From NCBI GenBank assembly GCA_964270895.1, contig OZ185439.1: DNA of 64,000 bases. One strand, written 5' to 3'. The stretch comes from Podarcis filfolensis. Its lineage: Eukaryota. Numbering within the stretch: the first letter of the stretch is position 1; each line of letters starts with the position of its first letter. This document shows positions 21,262 through 45,620 of the stretch, in pieces. Made by a program: the position numbers and the translations under genes. Below the pieces are notes generated by a model, which worked only from the letters and a program-made list of their open reading frames with translations, ran no database searches and had not been told where the DNA came from.

Positions 21262-21779
21262 TCTCAGCCACTCACCGCTAACCTGCAAGATGGCTCTGTG
21301 CTCTCACGGGGCACGACGCTCACAATCCTGCAAAGGCATTTAGCCTGGCAATTATAAATAAAAGCGCGATTTAAAAAACCTCTCTTTTTCAATTGGAGCT
21401 AGACAGCACAGCAGCCGCTTCTTCCGGCGACGCCAATCCGCCCAACTTCCCCGGTCAGCTCCCGCTGCCTACCTAACCCGGGGCGGAGGGCTCAGACGTA
21501 GGGTTCAGACGTGAACCCGAGTGCCCGAGAGATGGGGGCGGCGGAGGCGAAGCGCATATCGGCTCCCCGCGCATCTGCAGGAGCGAAGCAGGGTCCGCTC
21601 GGGTCCCATATCTGACGCGTGTTGGGATTCCTGCATGGCAGCGGGGTTGGTCTAGATGACCCTCGGGATCCCTGCCCACTCTTACAACTCCTGTGCGCCT
21701 GCGGATCCTGCTGCCCGAGGCAGTGGCCTCCTCTTGCCGCTAGCCAGTTCCCTCATATATCCCGGAAGCTGGCACCTAT

Positions 21780-22220
21780 TCATCTCTCTTCACTCCCCGC
21801 GTTTCTTTTATCTACGGTCTCGGCGCCCTTCCTTTCCGTGCGCCCGCCCCCTTCCGCCCCGGCCTGGCCAATCAGACTCGTTCTGCCGCCGACGCGCTTT
21901 CCTGTCATGGCCGCCGCCCCGCGCCGCAGCTTCTCCTCCTGAGGGACCGTCGCGCCGCTTCTTCCCTCGCCCGCCGCTCCCTCGCTGGCTCTCCCGCTCG
22001 CTCTGCCGCTCGGCGTCGCTGAGAGGCGGCCATGGGCACCGTCCACGCGCGGGTAAGGAGTGCCCGGCTGGCGGGCTTGGCGGGCGAGCGCGGCGACCTT
22101 GGGCGGAGGAGGGATCGGGGCCGCCAAGGTAGCGGAGACCCGCGCGCCCTTCCATGCACGCGCGCCCCAGGGCCGCGCCCCGCCGCTAGTACAACGCCCG
22201 GCCACCCTGGACAGCGTTCC
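21780..22220 (+). promoter_or_regulatory. SAMM50 CpG-island promoter
   Basis: Very GC/CpG-rich; GC boxes (cccgcccc ~21842) and CCAAT (ggccaatca ~21866) upstream of the ATG. Confidence 0.85.
22032..22052 (+). CDS. SAMM50: Sam50 (mitochondrial outer-membrane beta-barrel assembly) exon 1
   Basis: gccATGg Kozak in a CpG island; MGTVHAR; gtaagg donor; the 15 exons sum to 1410 nt = 469 aa + stop. Confidence 0.97.
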
Positions 22221-22879
22221 TCTGAGCATGTGAAGAATTCCTCCTCCTAGGATTATTGCCATTGGGTTTTTTTACGGCCGCCACCTGAAAAGGATACTGT
22301 CTATTCTGAGCATGTGCAGAACCCCCCACCCCCCTTTTTAGGGCTCTCCTTAAAAACAATACCGAACATTCCGAGCAGCGTTTTTCTGAGCATGTGCAGA
22401 GTGTGACCTTGAGAATGTGCAAAAGCGCCCGTGCTTGCATGAAGGCTGCTTTGGGTGCGCTGTGGAATCCGGTGCCTCCACTCCAGCCTGCCTGCCTGCC
22501 TTCGTTGGGTAGTGGTGGACTTTGCACATGCTCTGGTGCCTCAAGCCTTTGGAACAAGGAAGCAGGAGGGAGCGGAGGGGTTTCCCCCAGCAGACTTGGA
22601 CTGGCTTGCGTGGAGCCAGGGAGGCTCCTGCTTCCCCTAAGGAGCCTTAATCGATAATTCTCCAAGGTGGTGCTGCCTGTGATGGCGTCTCTGGTGGGAC
22701 TGCAGTGCTTTCCTTGGCAGCACAGTATTTACACACCTGTTGTGAAGGTAAAGTCTTCATGACACACCCACGTGCATCGCACTGACTTGGAGGTGGCACC
22801 TACGCTTTGCATCTTAAACATCAGGAAGATGTTTATGACAGCAAGAGCTGTTCCAGCTCCCTTGAAAGGTGGTGGTCTT

Positions 22880-23401: not shown

Positions 23402-24295
23402 TTGTTGTTGTTTAGTTGTTTAGTCGTGTCCGACTCTTCGTGACCCCCTGGACCAGAGCACGCCAGGCACTCCTGTCTTCCACGGCCTCCCGCAGTTTGG
23501 TCAGGCTCATGTTTGTAGCTTCGAGAACACTGTCCAACCATCTCGTCCTCTGTCGTCCCCTTCTCCTTGTGCCCTCCATCTTTCCCAACATCAGGGTCTT
23601 TTCCAAGGAGTCTTCTCTTCTCATGAGGTGGCCAAAGTATTAGAGCCTCAGCTTCACGATCTTTCCTTCCAGTGAGCACTCAGGGCTAATTTCCTTAAGA
23701 ATGGATGCGTTTGATCTTCTTGCAGTCCATGGGACTCTCAAGAGTCTCCTCCAGCACCATAATTCAAAAGCATCAATTCTTCGGCGATCAGCTTTCTTTA
23801 TGGTCCAGCTCTCACTTCCATACATCACTACTGGGAAAACCATGTCTTTAACTATACGGACCTTTGTTGGCAAGGTGATGTCTCTGCTTTTTAAGATACT
23901 GTCTAGATTTGCCATCGCCTTTCTCCCAAGGAGCAGGCGTCTTTTAGTTTCGTGGCTGCTGTCACCATCTGCAGTGATCATGGAGCCCAAGAAAGTAAAA
24001 TCTCTCACTGCCTCCATTTCTTCCCCTTCTATTTGCCAGGAGGTGATGGGCCCAGTGGCCATGATCTTCATTTTTTTGATGTTGAGCTTCAGACCATATT
24101 TTGCGCTCTCCTCTTTCACCCTCAATAAAAGGTTCTTTAATTCCTCCTCACTTTCTGCCATCAAAGTTGTGTCATCTGCATATCTGAGGTTGTTGATATT
24201 TCTTCCGGCGATCTTAATTCCGGCTTGGGATTCATCCAGCCCAGCCATTCGCATGATGAATTCTGCATATAAGTTAAATAAGCAGGGAGACAGCA
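23402..24295 (-). mobile_element. BovB (RTE clade) LINE, 5'-truncated, in SAMM50 intron 1
   Basis: RT C-terminus NINNLRYADDTTLMAESEEEL...AFELWCWRRLLRVPWTARRSN; 3' end gagtcggacacgactaaacaactaaacaacaa. Confidence 0.95.
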
Positions 24296-24533
24296 CAGCC
24301 AGCACCATAGGTGTCTATAATGGAATGAGAGCCACACCCCAAACATAAATGACCAATGCAGGTTACGTCTAAAAGTACATACCTGCTTAAAATCTTAGTG
24401 AACGATCTTTCTTTATTAAATAACCCTTCAGAGTTCTGTGAGATACTCATTCTCTAAATAGCACTTATACTGACCAAGTGCATTGTAAAATAAAAAGGCA
24501 AACTGAAAAATGTAATACTGTGTAAGGCAATTA

Positions 24534-25224: not shown

Positions 25225-25590
25225 GAAAATTCTTGGAGAACAGGTGATGTACCTGCAAACTAGAGGTGGGCAAATGTCCCCATCTTCAAAAGGGGGGGAG
25301 AGAAGACTATCAATTGGTGAGTTTGACATCAATATCAGGAAAGGTCCTAGAACAAAAAATTGAAGAGTTGGTTTGTAAGCATTTAGAAAATGATGCTGTG
25401 ATTACTAAGACTCAGCATGGGTTTCTCAAAAATAAGTCATTCCAGACAAATCTCATTTCTTTTTTTGATGGAGTTACAAGCTTGGTGAATAAGGGGAATG
25501 CTGTGGACATTGTGTATCTTGATTTCAGTAGGGCTTTTGACAAAGTCCCCTATGATATTCTTGCGAGGAAGCTGGTAAAATATGGGCTTC
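25225..25590 (+). mobile_element. CR1 LINE reverse-transcriptase internal fragment
   Basis: VSLTSISGKVLEQ...QHGFLKNKSFQTNLISFFDGVT...VDIVYLDFSRAFDKVP. Confidence 0.92.
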
Positions 25591-25813
25591 ACCCACAAAA
25601 TAATGTAAAAACCTGTTTAATAATGATGCTGTTTTTGCCACTTAAAATTCTTGACTTTGATTCATGATGAGACAATGTTCTGTGCTGTCTTGGAATTGCA
25701 GTTCAATAATTCATTGGTTATGGCACCATTATGTTTTAGTTGAGTAGAAATTCTAGTTGTCCTTGGAATGTTTCCAGGGTTAACATTTTGATGAGAACCA
25801 TCTTAATCTTTAG

Positions 25814-29761: not shown

Positions 29762-30916
29762 GTAAGATACCTTCAGAATGTAGTAAGGTTTCAGTGCTAT
29801 GTACATCTGTTTAGAAAAACCCTAGACCCTTGAAAAGGTATTGTAAGTGGTGTGCAGCAAAGGACAATAAAATCACCATTATACACCCCATTTTTTGAAA
29901 GATGAGCTACTTAAGGTAGTGACCCCAATACTCAATACGTTCACTCTCATTTGCAGTTGGTCACACTGAGAGCAGTTGGTAACAGCTTTCACTGCTATGA
30001 CCGTTAGCAAATATTTTAAGGCACGTGTCAACAGATTGGGCCATACCCAGTGCTTCAGCTCTGCTTATACAGTGGACTTAGTGTGAGCAACAGAGCTTAT
30101 TCTCCTGTCTGCTCCACCCACTCACCCCTGTGTACCCTAACTCTGGAGGCTTGGGGGATCTGGAACAAATGTTGGGGTATGTGTGTTGTGGCTGGAGAGG
30201 AAACAGAAGTTCCACATTGGATACCACCCAGTGTCTTGCAGTTTTAGAATCTATGCTTCCTTAGTTCCATCAAAAGAGTTCTTAAGGCAGTTGACATGGT
30301 AGAATTTACTCCTAAGTTTTCATTCTCTCCTATGCTTTTCCTTGAATGGGACATTTCTTGACTGCTGTAGGTCTTACCAGGCAGATGGGCATCAGATGTT
30401 GCTGGTTTTCTGGCCTCCCAGCTGCCATTGCTGTTGAAGTCATGCATAAAGTCCTTCTTCTCCCTTCTATCTGCTACTGTTGCCTTGCCAGGCTTTCAGC
30501 AGCCAGGAAAACTCCCCTCTGGTGATGTGTTCCTGAGCACCAGGCCTCAGTAGAACATGTTAATGCCCAAATTGGGTATGGGTTTTTGGAGTTATTCCCA
30601 TGGATAGAAAGTCTGTTTCACAACTTTATTATTATCATTATTAAAAATACTGTATCTAGCTTTAGCCCAGGAGATTTTTTTGAGCAAACATTTTGAGTGA
30701 CGAATTCAACTATATTTTTTACATGTATACATACAGGGCAGTGATTCCTCACACCATGTGTGCAAAGTATTACATTGGAACTAATTCTGCATTAATTAGG
30801 TTATATTTCTATGTTTTTCCATAGAAACTTTGGAGAAAGTGAGCAAGATATCTTGCTGTTTAGCTTCTATCTCTTGTTTCAGCTAATGCTAAGTCAAATA
30901 CAGTATCCTTCTGTTT

Positions 30917-30917
<1 letters not shown>

Positions 30918-30961
<44 letters not shown>

Positions 30962-31615
30962 TTATTTATACCCCGCCCATCTGGCTGGGCCTCCCCAGCC
31001 ACTCTGGGTGGCTTCCATGGAAACCAAAAATACAGTAAAATATCACACGTTAAACAGGGCTGCCTTAAGATGTCTTCTGAATGTCAGGTAGTTGTTTATC
31101 GCTTTGACATCTGCTGGAATGTCAGGTAGTTGTTTATCGCTTTGACATCTGCTGGAAGGGCGTTCCACAGGGCGGGCGCCACTACCGAGAAGGCCCTCTG
31201 CCTGGTTCCCTGTAGCTTTGCTTCTCGCAATGAGGGAACCGCCAGAAGGCCCTCGGCGCTGGACCTCAGCGTCTGGGCAGAATGATGGGGGTGGAGACGC
31301 TCCTTCAGGTATACTGGCCCGAGGCCGTTTAGGGCTTTAAAGGTCAGCACCAACACTTTGAATTGTGCTCGGAAACATACTGGGAGCCAATGTAGGTCTT
31401 TCAAGACCGGTGTTATATGGTCTCGGCGGCCGCCCCCAGTCACCAGTCTAGCTGCCGCATTCTGGATTAGTTGTAGTTTCCGAGTCACCTTCAAAGGTAG
31501 CCCCACGTAGAGTGCATTGCAGTAGTCCAAGCGGGAGATAACCAGAGCATGCACCACTCTGGCGAGACAGTCCGCAGGCAGATAGGGTCTCAGCCTACGT
31601 ACCAGATGGAGCTGG
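30918..31615 (-). mobile_element. Young L2-clade LINE 3' fragment with (TTA)n tail
   Basis: HALVISRLDYCNALYVGLP...QLIQNAAARLVT...LHWLPV...AFSVVAPALWNALP; CpG-rich; 38-bp internal tandem duplication at 31079-31156. Confidence 0.92.
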
Positions 31616-33815: not shown

Positions 33816-33974
33816 AGTGGGGAAGGAAGGAAAAATACAGAATGGACAAGGAGCACGAGAGGGGTGTGCAGAGAAGCAGCTGGCTAAGAATGCAGGAGAG
33901 GGGTATAACGGGAGGGAGGAAAGGAAGGCAAAAGTTTTCCCTCACCTACCCACCCACCCAAGCCAGCCAGCTCG

Positions 33975-34025
<51 letters not shown>

Positions 34026-34040
34026 CCTCCCTCCCTCCCT
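33975..34040. repeat. (CT)n(CCCT)n microsatellite
   Basis: Direct reading. Confidence 0.97.
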
Positions 34041-34537
34041 CCTGCATGTTTTCAGCAGCACCGGAGCACAGAGACGACACTCTGCTTTCCCCTCTGCTTG
34101 CCTGGAGGGGAGGGGCTTCTTTCCCTGCTCTTTGTTCCGTTTGAGCAAACACAGCAAGGAAACAGAGGCGGGTGGGCAGTAAGACCCTGAGGCAGAATGC
34201 AGGAAAGCAGCCACTTCCTCTTTTCAGGTTTCCCTTCTCTGAGACACGCGATTTGATTTTTGCCTGATTTTTTTTGCCATTTGGCTCCAGGGACCACACA
34301 TTCGCTCAATAACACGCACAGACATTTCCCCTTCCTTTTTAGGAGAAAAAATCTGCGTGTTATAGAGGGAAAAATACGGTACCTTAGCAGCAGCTCCTAT
34401 AGTCTGAGTTGGCTCTTCTAAGACTGGCTGCATTGCCAGTAAACCCAGTGCTCCTGCTCATAAAGATATATGTGAAAGATGCTGAAAATATGTAAATGTT
34501 TTCTCATTCATAATTAAAGAAATTGTTTCTTTTACAG

Positions 34538-36157: not shown

Positions 36158-36475
36158 GTAAGTACTTTTCAGTAAGTTTACTATTGGGAGTAAACGATTC
36201 ATAACATAGTACCTTTTAAAAAACCCCAAATGAAATAAAGTATCTTTTTAAAGTTACAAATTGTTTTAAGTACAGCATTTAGCAGTTCAGTTTGGAATCA
36301 GTTCAGCCTGCATATTAGAATATAGAAAATGTGTGCATTTTCCTAACAGGGAAAATGCAGGTGTGATGATTGTCACGTAAGTTTTGGAACTTGAGGGAGT
36401 TTCAGAAGCAGTTAGTGTTGTGGTGGGGAGATTTCTTGTTCTAAGAAGCCAGTTTGAATGTGTGTTTGTGTTGGA

Positions 36476-36476
<1 letters not shown>

Positions 36477-36542
<66 letters not shown>

Positions 36543-36552
36543 AGGGAGGGAG
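36477..36552. repeat. Compound (GT)n(GA)n(GGGA)n microsatellite
   Basis: Direct reading. Confidence 0.97.
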
Positions 36553-37329
36553 AATGGCATAACCCTTTGCTCAACATTAGGCAACTCTTGGCTCCTGAGC
36601 ATAATTTGCAGTATATAGGTACAATCTAGAGAAATCCATCTATTTGTGCCCTTTTGATTTTTTAAAAGTGCAATATAGGAAACTCTAGCCTTTGTTTTAA
36701 AAGGCTCTACAATATGAAAGTGGCTCAGGGGTTGGAGCTGGGCTATGTGGAGCCACGCTGTCATTTATACCGCCCCTGGACAGCCTTTCTTGTGCATGTA
36801 TTGAAACTTATTTTCCACTGGAAATGCTAAGATGAAAAAGGGGCAACATAACAACAACTATTATTCTGGAAGTAACTGATGTTGCTTCAGAAAGTACATA
36901 TTTTTATTTTTTACAAATTCAGTAAATGTGAGCCATTTTACTCCTAAAATTCCCCCCTTTTCTTTTTCATCCTGCAGTTGAACCAACTCTGTTTATTTCC
37001 AAACTTTTAGCTAGCTATTTTTTAATTGTAGGTGGCAAATTGTTCTTCCATGTTGGGGCTGCTAACATGCAGGCAGCGACTATTAAGTTCCATACAGGTT
37101 CTTTGTTTTATTTAGTCATCTAAATAACACAACAGAATTGCTAAAGGGTCCAAAGTTACAACATAATGGGTTATTAGTGTGATTAATCTAGTTACTACTA
37201 GGGTTTCATTATTAATGAACAAGACCACAAACATGCCTCATACCTGCATTCGAGGATCCACATCTCCAACATTTATCTGCACACCTGTCATATATTTTAC
37301 TCAATCTATGATTGCCTGTCTCTTTGAAG

Positions 37330-38320: not shown

Positions 38321-38825
38321 ATGGCAGAGGTTCCCAAACTTATCAGACCTACCACCCCCTTTTCAGAAAAAAATTACTCAGTGTCCCCTGGAAATCTACC
38401 TTCTTTAAGTGAACAAACAGAAAGATGCATTGTCAAAATTGCGTTCTTTATGTATCTGTGTTTCTGCCTACGTCCTACAACGTAGTGAAGAAAGACGTTG
38501 TTGTAATTAGGCAGGCAAGCTTCCCAGGCCTGGGTGAAGCCAAAAAGGGGTCACCCAAGCCCTGGAAACCCCTACTCCTCCAGCTTGAACCCCAGATCCA
38601 GGGGAAGCGTTGTTGTCGTCCCACAACATTGTTCTGAAAGTTGTTCTGTGATCCATTGCCAGCAGGTGGGACCTTCAATAAAGTTTTACAGTGTGTAGTG
38701 CTTCTATGGACAGTTATGGCAAAAAAGTTGATTTAGCTTAAAGTGACAGAGGTATCCTCTTATACTGAATAGTTTTCTTGGCATTGCTGATGTAGTGAAT
38801 ATTTTGTGCTGTGCTACTCTTCTAG

Positions 38826-38972
38826 GGGATTATCTGGGAGGTGAAGCTTACTGGGCTGGAGGTCTGCATTTGTACACTCCTCTCCCTTTTCGGCCTGGCC
38901 GGGGAGGATTTGGAGATCTGTTCAGAACACACTTCTTTCTCAACGCTGGCAATCTCTGCAATCTTAATTATG
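38826..38972 (+). CDS. SAMM50: SAMM50 exon 13
   Basis: tctag/gtaaga; 147 nt; [48 protein letters not shown]. Confidence 0.97.
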
Positions 38973-39164
38973 GTAAGAAGCAAATACATTGGAGCCCCCC
39001 CCCCACCTTTTAAGGCATTTTAACTGTTTCTGCAAAAATTATGTTTTTTAAATTGAGTGTTTTAAAATATTTTACTGCCTTGTACCTGGAACAGAACTTG
39101 GGCTACTGGCCATGAAAACATTTGGTTATTGTCTCATTCTCATTGGCTTCCTTTCCATTCCCAG

Positions 39165-39306
39165 GTGAAGGTCCTAAGGCTCATCTTCGTAAACTAGCAG
39201 AGTGCATCCGGTGGTCTTATGGTGCTGGAATAGTTCTCAGGCTTGGAAACATTGCTCGATTAGAACTCAATTATTGTATCCCAATGGGAGTACAAAGTGG
39301 GGACAG
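39165..39306 (+). CDS. SAMM50: SAMM50 exon 14
   Basis: cccag/gtatgt; 142 nt; [46 protein letters not shown]. Confidence 0.97.
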
Positions 39307-39956
39307 GTATGTTCAGCTATTCTAAATTGCCTTTCCACCTAATATATGTTAAAAAAATATAAATAAGCTATTTTACAGCTTCAAAACTGTAAAATCCACT
39401 ATATGCTCCTCTCTAATCGCATACCAACATAAAAGAGCTGATAGCATATCCTCTGTTCAAGGCCCAGTGACTTGCAAAGCTATAAGATGAAAAGAATACT
39501 AGAGAGCTAAAAAAAACCCCTAGTGATTCTCTTTTCTCCCCCTCCCTGCCAAGTCATCTAAAACTAGACAGATTTGTTGCTTAATTGCTTCCCTGGAGAG
39601 AATGTCACAGGGAAAGCCTTTCTCCTTAAACTTTCTGCAGAAGCAGGATTCAGAGCGTGACTTCATCTGCCTATCATAAAAAGGGGACACTGGCTGATAT
39701 AGGGGGGGAAAGCCATGCAATGCTTTATAGGTGCATTAGAAACAGCACTTTGAGTCACACTCATACTCATATTAACATCCAGCACAGCTGAGCAACCATT
39801 GGTTTGGTCTTCTTTCTGCACCATCTGTCAACCTAGTTGTATGCTAATGATGTTAGGGACAGTCTCATGGAACACACTAGAGTAATTTGATTTTCAAGAG
39901 AACCAAGACATGTTCCTTGTTCTCTGAGAAGAGGTGCAGTTAATATATGAGATGTA

Positions 39957-40630
39957 CACCTGTGTGCAAATTAATTGAAACAAACGATGTAGTTTATTGT
40001 ACAAAACTCACATATACATGTACAAAACTCACATATACGTATATTAGTAATGGATATGACCTCCGCTATTTTTAAGCAGCATTTGAACAAGGTTTAGCAT
40101 GGAGTCTAATAGTTTCGAACAGTCACTGTTGATTTTCTGACCCTGTACCACACTTGAATCAGTGCCTGAATGAGCTTCTCCATAGTCGTACAGTCTGCAG
40201 CACGGAGGCGACTTTTGCCTATAGCCCACAAATTCTCAATGGGATTTACGTCCGGGGAATTCCCTGGCCAATCAAGTACCTGTATTTGCTGCTCTGTCAT
40301 GAATTTCTTCACCACTTTTGACGTGTGACAGGGGGCTAGGTTATGCTGCAATATCCCAGTACTGTCAGATACCTCTTTTCCAGCTCTGGAATAACTCTTT
40401 TTCGTAGAACCTCAATATCAGGCATAGGCAACCTCAGCTCTCCAGATGTTTTGGGACTACAATTCCCATCATCCCTGACCACTGGTCCTATTAGCTAAGG
40501 ACCATGGGAGTTGTAGTCCCAAAACATCTGGAAGGCCGAGGTTGCCTATGCCTGCTCAATATATTGTGGCGAGCGCATCATTCCTTCTATTTGCTGCAGG
40601 CTTCCAATACCATAATGATCCACTGACTTT
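39957..40630 (-). mobile_element. Tc1 transposon relic (right end plus DD34E transposase C-terminus), interrupted by a hAT MITE
   Basis: GIGSLQQIEGMMRSPQYIEVLRKRVIP...QHNLAPCH...WPGNSPDVNPIENLW; TA plus TIR-like cacctgtgtgcaaattaattgaaaca at 39957. Confidence 0.88.
40419..40554. mobile_element. hAT-type palindromic MITE, 136 bp
   Basis: TIR caggcataggcaac; perfect 8-bp TSD ctcaatat. Confidence 0.92.
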
Positions 40631-41446: not shown

Positions 41447-41492
41447 AATATGTGATGGAGTTCAGTTTGGAGCTGGAATAAGATTCTTGTAA
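41447..41492 (+). CDS. SAMM50: SAMM50 terminal exon 15 (beta-signal)
   Basis: ttccag acceptor; ICDGVQFGAGIRFL then TAA. Confidence 0.97.
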
Positions 41493-41608: not shown

Positions 41609-41760
41609 AATAAAGAAACTTGCTTTAAAAAGTTGCTTTATGGTGTGATGCATTCTTGATTTCTTCAAAAACTTTAAAAAATAAAAAAATCAGGACTTGG
41701 AAAACAGCAACCTGTAACTCAGTTTGAGGACTCACTTTTGCCAAGGGAGACACAAATAAA
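41609..41760 (+). terminator. Candidate SAMM50 polyadenylation signals
   Basis: AATAAA at 41609, 41680 and 41755, 120-270 nt after the stop; the site actually used cannot be determined. Confidence 0.6.
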
Positions 41761-43137
41761 ACTTGCATTTGGTATAGCTGAAGGTGTTATTAGGGCTGGT
41801 CAGTTAACTCGTCCTTTGAGAAGAATGAGTGGAGGAGCCACATCTCTGCTGTGCATGTGCTAGGAGGGGCATAATATCGTATTACTGTACTTGGGTTTGC
41901 ATCTATAATCCTACCTGGAAACAAAGCTCCATGGAAACATTGAATATGTTGATATGTTTAGATTAAAGGAGTAAAGCGGAAAGAACAACATTATCTAGGA
42001 ATGTTATAAAGAGAGAAAAATCCAAAATCTAAAGAGTGCAATGATTGTATCAAACTTAAAAAATAAGGAAGTTGTGGTGTGGTGGAGGGAAGTCGGGTGT
42101 GGTGGTGGAAAGCGATTGTGGGCAGGAAGGATTTATGTTTGTGTAAATAATAGTGCATTTCTGTGTGCTTTTGTTTGGGTAGCATGTACGTTTCTTTTGC
42201 TCCTTTTTGTATTAAAAAACCCCTCAAAAATTAAAAAAGGAAAAAGAAAGAAAGTGAGGGTTAGGGTTGGCTCACACATGCATTTCATATCACTTAGTGC
42301 CGCACAGTTGAATGTATGAATGGGCTCTTATCAAAAAGCACAGTGTTTGAGGCAGCATGAAAAGTTCTGCCCATGGCTATTTTTTTTTTTACTGCTATTC
42401 ACAAATGTGAAGAAAATGCTGGAGGCTGTTTTTAGGTACAAGTTAAACACGTTTAGGGTTTGGTATCCATATTGAAAGGGCTTGCTTTGCAGATGTGTGA
42501 TCAGAGACGGTTTTTCAGGGCGTATCAGAACATTTCTCGAGGGAAAGGCAACTGTTTAGATGACTAACAGAGCTTCTTCCTGTTCTGCTATTTTAGATCC
42601 TGACTTTGCTGCTCAGCAGTCCCTCTTCCATTAAAGAGGAACTAAATGCTTGGTGTCTCACTCATCTTCACTTGACACAAGCCCTACACTTTCTACGGTG
42701 TGGGTGACTTGCAAAGAGAAGCAACAGCTAGGCCCAGCCAGGGCTGCTCTTCAGTTACAGGAGCACCTTTGACTCTCTAAAGGCAGGGAAAGCTCGGTGC
42801 ATTGTGTCTCATCTTTATATGATGGCAAATGCACTCTTAAGCTTTTAATTATATTATCCAGTTATATAGTAAGAAAATGCTGGATCAGGCTAATGATCCA
42901 TCTAGTCCAGCATCCTGTTCTCACAGATGCTAACCAGATATCTGTATTAGTCCAGTAATGATGCACAGTATGTGCATTCTTTGATTTTAGCAATAATTGT
43001 ATAATTCCAGTTAATTTCAGTTTACTGTGACTTTTCTTCTATGCATCACCATAATTTATTTTCTGTTAAGATGATCCTGAGGCCTTGGCAGTGGTCCCAT
43101 TCAAACAGCTCAGAATAGCTAACATAGTACTAGCAGT

Positions 43138-43363
43138 TACAGATAGGTAGCCGTGTTGGTCTGCCATAGTCAAAACAAAAAAATTTTTTTTCCTTCCAGT
43201 AGCACCTTAAAGACCAACTAAGTTAGTTCTTGGTATGAGCTTTCGTGTGCATGCACACTGTGTATCTGAAGAAGTGTGCATGCACACGAAAGCTCATACC
43301 AAGAACTAACTTAGTTGGTCTTTAAGGTGCTACTGGAAGGAAAAAAAAAATTTTGTTTTGACT
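43138..43363. mobile_element. Penelope-like element remnant (inverted terminal repeats)
   Basis: ~92-bp inverted arms with a 15-bp spacer; 14-bp TSD atagtactagcagt; sequence of the reptile Penelope type (ctgaagaag...cgaaagct). Confidence 0.8.
43262..43299 (+). ncRNA. Minimal type I hammerhead ribozyme motif
   Basis: Stem I GUAU/AUAC, core CUGAAGA, extra A, stem II GUGUG-CAUG-CACAC, GAAA, palindromic stem III AGCU, CUC cleavage triplet at 43293-43295; activity not demonstrated. Confidence 0.75.
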
Positions 43364-44166
43364 ATAGTACTAGCAGTGATGGAGATGGGAGGTGATGACG
43401 ATTGAGAAGGAGAATCTTCTAAAGCTTGAACAGGAAAGAAGCAGTGCAAGGAAGGCAATACGCAGGTTTCCTCTTTGCAAGGTGGCCACTGGTATTAGAG
43501 TCACAAGCAATATACCTGGCATTAGTAGGTGGAGAAAAATGCATTGCTCACCACTGGTGATGTAACAGGTGCTGTCCAATAGGTGCCCATGGCACACATG
43601 CAACTGCGTTCCACACAACACTCTAAATCTCATTTCCCCTACCATCTTGGGAATGAGCCTCATTTTCCTAGCAATAAGACTGGTGATATCCCAGTCACTT
43701 CCTTGTCATAAGAAATTTGGATAGCTACATTTGTTGCATTCTAACGGATATTTTCCTTGTTCTGTTCACATTATCTACAGCTTTGGCAAAGGCAAGAAAC
43801 GCTATGTTGATAAGCATGCAGCTTCATGATGATTGTAGAGTTGGTAGGAATCCCAAGGGTCATCTAGTCCAACCCCCTGCAATGCAGAAACCACCACCAA
43901 CCACCATGACTGATGGCCATCCAAACTCTGCTTAAAAACCTCCAAGGAATCACACACACATATAATGTGTGTCACTGCTACATATTGTGAAATGATATTT
44001 TGCATGGGTCATACCATTACCAAACGGTGTGGGAAAAGGGTGACGCGAACACTTGTCAGGCCTCACTAGGTGGTGTTTCGATACCCTCCCCAAGTGATTA
44101 GACAACCTTAGAAGACATCTGAAGGCAGCCCTGAATAGGGAAGTTCTTTAAATGTTTTATTTAACG

Positions 44167-44979: not shown

Positions 44980-45620
44980 TCCCCTCGAAGGCAAGCCTTT
45001 GCCGGCGACAGAGCAGCCTCGCCCGCTCGCCCGTCCCGCCCCTCCTGCCGCCGGACCCGCCCCTCGGCCTCCCGCGCCACCGGCGGGCGCTGCGCTCTCC
45101 GGGCAGACCCTCCGGCCCCGCCGGGGATGCGCCCTTGCGCGCGCGCGCCCCGCCTCCCCTCCCGTTGCGCCCCGCGGCGGGCTGCGTGTCTCCCGGCTGC
45201 CGGCGCCGCTGCGGGCCTCCGGGCGCCCTCCCTCCGCGCCTCGCCCCCTCGCCGCCCCGGGCGCGCCCATGTCCTCCACGCCGGTGCGCTCGCCCACCCT
45301 GCGGCCGCACAGGATGAAGAAGGACGAGTCCTTCCTGGGCAAGCTCGGCGGGACGCTGGCCAGGAAGAAGAAAGCCCGAGAGGGTGAGCGGGGCGCCGGG
45401 AGGGCGGGGGGCCCGGAGGGCGACGAGGAGGAGGAGGAGGAAGACCAGGCGGCCTTCCGTGGGGGGCGGGGGGACTCGCGCAGCCCGGGCTCGTGGCATA
45501 GGATCGCGGCTGCGCGCTGCCTCTCCGCTCGGAATGCCGAGCTCCCAGCCCAGCCCGCCGCCCTCTGATGATTTCCAGTTGTCTGGAAACTTTCCTGGCG
45601 GCGCGGCTGGTTTCTCGTGG
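44980..45620 (+). promoter_or_regulatory. PARVB CpG-island promoter
   Basis: Dense CpG, GC boxes and (CG)n runs surrounding exon 1. Confidence 0.85.
45269..45383 (+). CDS. PARVB: Beta-parvin (affixin) coding exon 1
   Basis: MSSTPVRSPTLRPHRMKKDESFLGKLGGTLARKKKARE plus gtgagc donor, in a CpG island. Confidence 0.96.

Follow-up and report, generated by a model that had tools for sequence, protein, structure and literature searches.

A minimal hammerhead motif of the Penelope-like class in a putative head-to-head retrotransposon relic between SAMM50 and PARVB of Podarcis filfolensis

The locus and its gene context

The window analysed here is a 64-kb stretch of contig OZ185439.1 of the lizard Podarcis filfolensis (assembly GCA_964270895.1), in which SAMM50 is followed by PARVB on the same strand. 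SAMM50 exon 1 carries MGTVHAR at 22032 (+), and the surrounding region (21600–22250) appears to be G+C-rich, judging from its many overlapping open frames. Further plus-strand exons carry Pfam Omp85 matches at 38747–39010 and 39116–39322. The protein ends with GAGIRFL, the stop codon lies at 41490–41492, and candidate poly(A) signals follow at 41609, 41680 and 41755. Further downstream, a CpG island (45000–45499, GC 0.80) has open frames in all six reading frames, including a plus-strand frame starting at about 45269. The product of this frame contains KKDESFLGKLGGTLARK, which we take to be the N-terminus of parvin, encoded by the presumed PARVB exon 1.

The element that is the subject of this report lies between the two genes; from the SAMM50 stop codon it is about 1.65 kb away, and the presumed PARVB ATG follows after about 1.9 kb. 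It contains one complete hammerhead motif, which is placed on the sense strand of both genes. Because the candidate poly(A) signals of SAMM50 are located well upstream, the motif would be present only in rare SAMM50 read-through RNA.

Several other repeats were observed in the window. An 84-nt hairpin in the last SAMM50 intron (40445–40528), palindromic on both strands, matches the Rfam model mir-5408 with 50.3 and 48.3 bits against a gathering score of 90, and may be a MITE-type repeat. Simple repeats occur at 30890–31090, 33900–34140 and 36440–36620; an AAT-type run is translated into poly-N and poly-I frames, and CT/GA-type runs into SLSLSL and ERERER frames.

Anatomy and uniqueness of the hammerhead motif

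Direct reading of the plus strand gives one complete minimal type I hammerhead core of 38 bases at 43262–43299, composed of the following parts.

43262–43265, plus strand: 5' strand of helix I (GTAT), forming 4 bp with 43296–43299
43266–43272, plus strand: CTGAAGA box, C3 to A9, agreeing with C3-U4-G5-A6-N7-G8-A9
43273, plus strand: extra unpaired A between A9 and position 10.1, read directly
43274–43287, plus strand: helix II and its loop (GTGTG/CATG/CACAC), 5 bp, 43274–43278 with 43283–43287
43288–43291, plus strand: GAAA, G12 to A15.1 of the core
43292–43293, plus strand: palindromic pair GC, G15.2 and C16.2
43294–43295, plus strand: TC, U16.1 (43294) and C17 (43295), agreeing with U16.1-H17
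43296–43299, plus strand: 3' strand of helix I (ATAC), pairing with GTAT
3' of C43295, plus strand: cleavage position predicted from the motif

Helices I and II flank the core in type I order and are both formed in the minimum-free-energy fold of the 38-mer, the stability of which is about that of its shuffles (z = −0.44). The first pair of helix II, G10.1-C11.1, corresponds to G43274-C43287. A closed intramolecular helix III is absent from the motif; only A15.1-G-C-U16.1 is found in its place and, since these bases leave no loop, helix III pairing is possible only with a second copy. The helix II segment with its loop reads GTGTGCATGCACAC, a perfect palindrome of 14 nt that occurs at 43245–43258 and 43274–43287. 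Being self-complementary, this segment could also allow two RNAs to pair through helix II, and two cofolded 38-mers reach −30.6 kcal/mol, compared with −13.6 kcal/mol for two monomers. The resulting structure would be a domain-swapped dimer, unlike the usual helix III dimer, and it would still have no helix III.

The uniqueness of the motif was assessed with a minimal-hammerhead descriptor of our own, comprising both boxes, an optional bulge, helix II, helix I and UH, together with a helix III term defined as an even palindrome of 0–6 nt. Across both strands of the 64-kb window, and with stems relaxed to 2–3 bp included, the descriptor matched only the motif at 43262–43299. None of 300 dinucleotide-preserving shuffles of the window matched the strict descriptor; allowing 3-bp stems raised the chance rate to 0.003 per shuffle, and the loosest setting raised it to 0.03. 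On the other hand, the Rfam hammerhead families gave no match at E ≤ 10 and none at gathering score when a 7-kb region and a 56-nt slice were searched; a scan of the whole window likewise returned no hammerhead family, only sub-threshold matches to miRNA hairpins. The failure of Rfam at the motif is attributable to the absence of a closed helix III and of loop-loop contacts, which are features that the curated models score.

Neither the descriptor nor a covariance-model search with filters off located a second full motif in the 64 kb. The only other match is a truncated half on the opposite strand. There is no second copy on the same strand within the 64 kb such as an active dimer needs, and no direct repeat of the hammerhead unit in the window; with a single complete motif, there is no dimer partner. 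Three probes of 20–30 nt, allowing up to 3 mismatches, recovered only the element and its own mirror half in the window. Flank- and core-anchored patterns had no match in metagenome, viral and prokaryote collections, in which reptile-like DNA is not expected, so that this result is uninformative on the size of the family. A family-specific descriptor was without match in metagenome or prokaryote genome collections, which we count toward the motif not being a product of chance.

A hairpin-forming insertion of 226 nt

The motif lies within an insertion of 226 nt (43138–43363) bounded by a perfect 14-bp direct repeat. The features of the insertion and its borders are as follows.

43124–43137, strand not applicable: left copy of the target-site duplication, ATAGTACTAGCAGT, 100% identical to 43364–43377
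43138–43167, minus strand: one-sided tail of 28–30 nt, placed by arm alignment at the 3' end of the minus-strand copy and missing from the other copy
43138–43259, minus strand: inverted 5'-truncated copy, identified by inverted repeat, partial covariance-model match and arm alignment
43173–43359, strand not applicable: hairpin, with arms of 87 nt each (43173–43259 and 43273–43359) that are 95% complementary
43260–43363, plus strand: 5'-truncated copy lacking the tail, identified by inverted repeat and arm alignment
43364–43377, strand not applicable: right copy of the target-site duplication, a direct repeat

The 14-bp duplication is AT-rich (64% A+T) and contains no ATT motif; the AT at 43364–43365, before the duplication, can be assigned either to the element or to the duplication. 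Pairing of the arms runs outward to about 43166/43365, and the 13-nt loop between them (43260–43272) contains the 5' strand of helix I and the CUGAAGA box. When both arms are read in the RNA sense, they are identical from the bulged A onward, except for the composition of one A/T run. The 241-nt stretch folds into a single hairpin with a minimum free energy of −165 kcal/mol (z = −25).

The two copies differ at both ends. The minus-strand copy starts only with the bulged A, and neither the 5' strand of helix I nor the CUGANGA box is included in it. What it retains is the 3' part of the hammerhead, from the bulge to C17, which was matched at 43237–43259 (−) by positions 12–39 of the covariance model with filters off. 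The plus-strand copy extends 13 nt further in the 5' direction and thus includes the whole hammerhead. At the other side, the 3' end points of the two copies lie 68–70 and 99 nt past the cleavage site, 29–31 nt apart, and the minus-strand copy alone carries the tail. The distal end is AC-rich and contains ACCAACAC on the RNA sense strand, and the small stem-loop of the tail (43138–43167) is no more stable than its shuffles.

The insertion represents an extreme truncation, in which about 100–120 nt per copy remain as a single non-coding hairpin. No open frame through the element exceeds 32 aa, and the frame starting at the ATG of loop II has only 9 codons. In Penelope-like elements (PLEs), minimal hammerheads sit in the flanking repeat (pLTR) of an element that codes for a reverse transcriptase and a GIY-YIG endonuclease; no motif of a PLE reverse transcriptase or endonuclease was detected in the 64-kb window. 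An exact look-up of the 97-aa ORF adjoining the element, aimed at an empty site in other assemblies, returned no record. The sole YADD motif of the window, at 24182 (−), lies in a fragment that by eye resembles a non-PLE reverse transcriptase. Open frames like LINE reverse transcriptases occur in SAMM50 introns at 23640–24350 (−) and 25248–25664 (+); the latter contains a HGF...QTNLISF-type stretch that by eye is like CR1/L2 or Bov-B, and neither frame looks PLE-like.

The original prediction had anticipated much of this architecture. The complete core with its 4-bp helix I, 5-bp helix II and palindromic, loopless helix III is indeed present at 43262–43299, and repeat search and folding bore out the long flanking hairpin as well as the insertion of 226 nt and its 14-bp duplication. 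It had further been stated that the mirror arm lacks the CUGAAGA half, leaving the plus strand as the only complete one, and the descriptor and covariance-model searches agree. The predicted placement ahead of PARVB exon 1, in the sense of SAMM50, is correct in both gene order and strand.

Relationship to Penelope-like elements

Minimal hammerhead ribozymes of PLEs have been described as lacking helix III and having a short helix I, with a nucleotide inserted between A9 and 10.1 (Cervera & de la Pena 2014, PMC4209133). They also share a conserved G10.1-C11.1 pair and a palindromic 15.2/16.2 dinucleotide, and they mostly occur alone in truncated elements, at times as close pairs on opposite strands; among reptiles, they have been recorded in a turtle and in snakes (PMC4209133). 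All of the PLE hallmarks that are not imposed by a search for the core, namely the bulge, G10.1-C11.1, the palindromic 15.2/16.2 and a helix I of 4–5 bp, are present in the motif reported here. It is likewise of type I, has the CUGANGA, GAAA and UH boxes and a palindromic 15.2/16.2 that requires a dimer, and stands by itself within a truncated element, with a partial copy nearby on the opposite strand (PMC4209133). It departs from the described families in helix II, which has 5 bp and a self-complementary CAUG loop, compared with 6–8 bp in those families.

The anatomy of the insertion leads in the same direction. PLE insertions are characterized by strong 5' truncation, by an adjoining inverted 5'-truncated copy and by a tail of 30–40 bp that is often found at one end (PMC8557442). 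The insertion between SAMM50 and PARVB resembles this canonical form (Evgen'ev & Arkhipova 2005; Craig et al. 2021, PMC8557442) in its truncation, inverted copy, one-ended tail and duplication. Its tail of 28–30 nt, at the left end only, is slightly below the quoted 30–40 bp, and its inverted 5'-truncated neighbour is represented by the 87-nt arms, 13 nt apart.

A further comparison is with Poseidon_Ac, a PLE of Anolis carolinensis, whose protein is able to cut each of the two DNA strands and to extend it (Frangieh et al. 2024, PMC11167929). Reverse transcription of Poseidon_Ac has two internal starts about 34 nt apart, which account for the tail, and the distal one is AC-rich. Its hammerhead is located where the flanking repeat meets the ORF and has been validated through C3G/G8C rescue; ATT is preferred as the insertion target (PMC11167929). 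We aligned the Poseidon_Ac hammerhead, taken from the supplement of PMC11167929, with the motif at 43262–43299. The two agree in the core except for N7, the bulge base and 15.2/16.2, which is GC here and CG in Poseidon_Ac. Common to both are the bulge after A9, the GAAA box, a palindromic dinucleotide, UC at the cleavage site and an ATG within helix/loop II. Each of the nine stem pairs is preserved, four of them with changes on both sides, and G10.1-C11.1 is invariant. Controls in which the partner was slid by 1–3 columns were at most 62% paired, although as a covariation test with two sequences the comparison is weak, since 39 of 500 shuffles do as well.

The likeness extends beyond the ribozyme. 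The 3' end points of the Poseidon_Ac copies lie about 55 and about 89 nt past the cleavage site, compared with 68–70 and 99 nt here. Like Poseidon_Ac, the present element has an AC-rich distal end and presumably insertion products from both DNA strands. On the other hand, the stems and the downstream sequence are unlike those of Poseidon_Ac, whose hammerhead overlaps the start of its ORF, whereas the one reported here does not. These differences, together with the 9-codon frame opened by the ATG, indicate a different PLE family.

Two other kinds of hammerhead-bearing sequence deserve comparison. In the double hammerheads of ASBVd and newt satellite 2 (Forster et al. 1988, via PMC4209133 and PMC6765202), as in the present motif, helix III is unstable or absent until two copies pair; those tandem multimers, however, always have a partner, whereas only one copy exists here. 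Non-LTR retrozymes of animals (Cervera & de la Pena 2020, PMC7229834; bioRxiv 10.64898/2026.07.22.740005) are also short, non-coding, PLE-related sequences with a type I hammerhead. Retrozymes have a hammerhead in each unit and form circular RNAs, and this identity does not fit the insertion, which has no tandem direct repeats and only one full hammerhead. A MITE or DNA transposon with terminal inverted repeats is disfavoured as well, because the left 28–30 nt are unmatched on the right and the duplication is of 14 bp.

From its sequence, the motif thus appears to be one of the minimal hammerhead ribozymes ordinarily carried by Penelope-like retrotransposons, and not an invention of the host. 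The hallmarks, the anatomy of the insertion and the match to Poseidon_Ac all support the predicted assignment to the minimal, dimer-type, type I hammerheads of PLEs. For the insertion as a whole, we infer a PLE origin from its anatomy and by analogy with a different PLE family.

Origin of the insertion and rival explanations

We consider it quite probable that the motif is a PLE minimal hammerhead in a young, neutral, head-to-head relic, which is probably silent and plays no role in SAMM50 or PARVB expression. Carried near the 5' end of a PLE, the minimal type I hammerhead would have arrived inside the 226-nt insertion. A staggered double-strand break may have produced the 14-bp duplication, and the 3' ends of both cut DNA strands may have primed cDNA synthesis on one PLE RNA. 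One cDNA, primed at the distal start, would have kept the tail of about 30 nt, and the other, from the proximal start, would be tail-less. Both cDNAs presumably ended within or just beyond the hammerhead before being linked head to head. That the duplication is perfect and the arms are near-identical suggests a young insertion, and also recent PLE activity in the genome.

A competing possibility is that the palindromic repeat has nothing to do with PLEs, being for instance a foldback element or a MITE, and came to resemble a hammerhead by chance. In its favour, the palindrome itself yields helix II and part of helix I, so that the stems come cheaply; no Rfam hammerhead model matches, and a MITE-like hairpin repeat lies nearby at 40445–40528. 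The eleven fixed core bases, the bulge, the G10.1-C11.1 pair and the 15.2/16.2 pair are, however, not given by the palindrome, and the CUGAAGA box lies in the unpaired loop. None of the 300 shuffles matched, and the 14-bp duplication with its one-ended extension is a misfit for a transposon with terminal inverted repeats while it fits PLEs; we regard a chance origin as quite unlikely. A different emphasis is placed on the hairpin of about 95 bp, which could itself be the relevant RNA, as a Dicer or ADAR substrate and a source of small RNAs directed against the PLE family. This possibility is compatible with a young PLE relic, and both can hold. The near-perfect fold (−165 kcal/mol, z = −25) speaks for it, as do several sub-threshold matches to miRNA-precursor models. 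Those matches remain below the gathering scores (mir-559, 61.2 versus 95; mir-277, 38.6 versus 43; MIR1222, 44.9 versus 90), and their occurrence on both strands is what would be expected of any long palindrome. Since the arms are, in addition, far longer than those of a typical miRNA precursor, we consider a main role of the hairpin RNA unlikely.

The least probable of the readings, to which we give hardly any credence, is a host-exapted ribozyme that cuts SAMM50 read-through RNA before the PARVB promoter, with the hairpin as an on/off switch. It can point to a motif that is complete on the SAMM50 sense strand, with an intact core, and that is situated between the SAMM50 stop codon and the PARVB ATG at about 45269. 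The arguments on the opposite side are more numerous: the single copy has nothing to dimerize with, adopting the ribozyme fold costs +44.7 kcal/mol relative to the hairpin, and with three candidate poly(A) signals upstream only rare read-through RNA would be affected. Furthermore, the perfect duplication and near-identical arms mark an insertion that is young and shows no trace of selection, and PLE minimal hammerheads are inactive as monomers (PMC4209133).

Predicted activity at the locus

The hammerhead of an active PLE is believed to trim element RNA from tandem or read-through transcripts, either through the pairing of two copies into a dimer or assisted by the element protein. In vitro, single minimal hammerheads of PLEs showed no cleavage, and dimers were weak (PMC4209133; reviewed in PMC6765202). 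Cleavage by the Poseidon_Ac hammerhead required its protein, and RNA-seq reads neither began nor ended at the predicted site (PMC11167929).

In a transcript across the insertion between SAMM50 and PARVB, the 3' half of the motif would pair with the other arm to form the hairpin. The insertion RNA reaches −162.3 kcal/mol as a hairpin, compared with −117.6 kcal/mol when helices I and II are forced with an open core. In these calculations, the competition between hairpin and ribozyme fold that the original prediction foresaw favours the hairpin by 44.7 kcal/mol. Masked by the hairpin and having no partner copy, the motif would most likely be catalytically silent, and thermodynamics and the literature together indicate that the hammerhead is most likely inactive at this locus. 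This state could be altered if the RNA folds co-transcriptionally, if helicases act on it or if a PLE protein is provided in trans. The further proposal that the motif cleaves SAMM50 read-through RNA is disfavoured by the single copy, the preference for the hairpin and the inactivity of published PLE monomers, and nothing was found in support of the hairpin acting as a switch.

The biological weight of the locus is small, and its value for annotation is somewhat greater. The shortest PLE relics may be recognized by a hairpin flanked by a target-site duplication, a one-ended tail about 30 nt long and a minimal hammerhead where the hairpin folds back; they could otherwise be taken for a MITE, the precursor of a miRNA or a ribozyme of the host.

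A broader and quite improbable possibility is that head-to-head PLE insertions folding at or beside helix II are made systematically, scattering "self-masked" ribozymes genome-wide, with the palindromic helix II serving as a stop for reverse transcription or as a joining point for the cDNAs. Were this so, such insertions might yield long dsRNA that feeds small-RNA silencing of PLEs, or a ribozyme that is freed upon unwinding, and the present locus would be one example, placed between two genes on the same strand.
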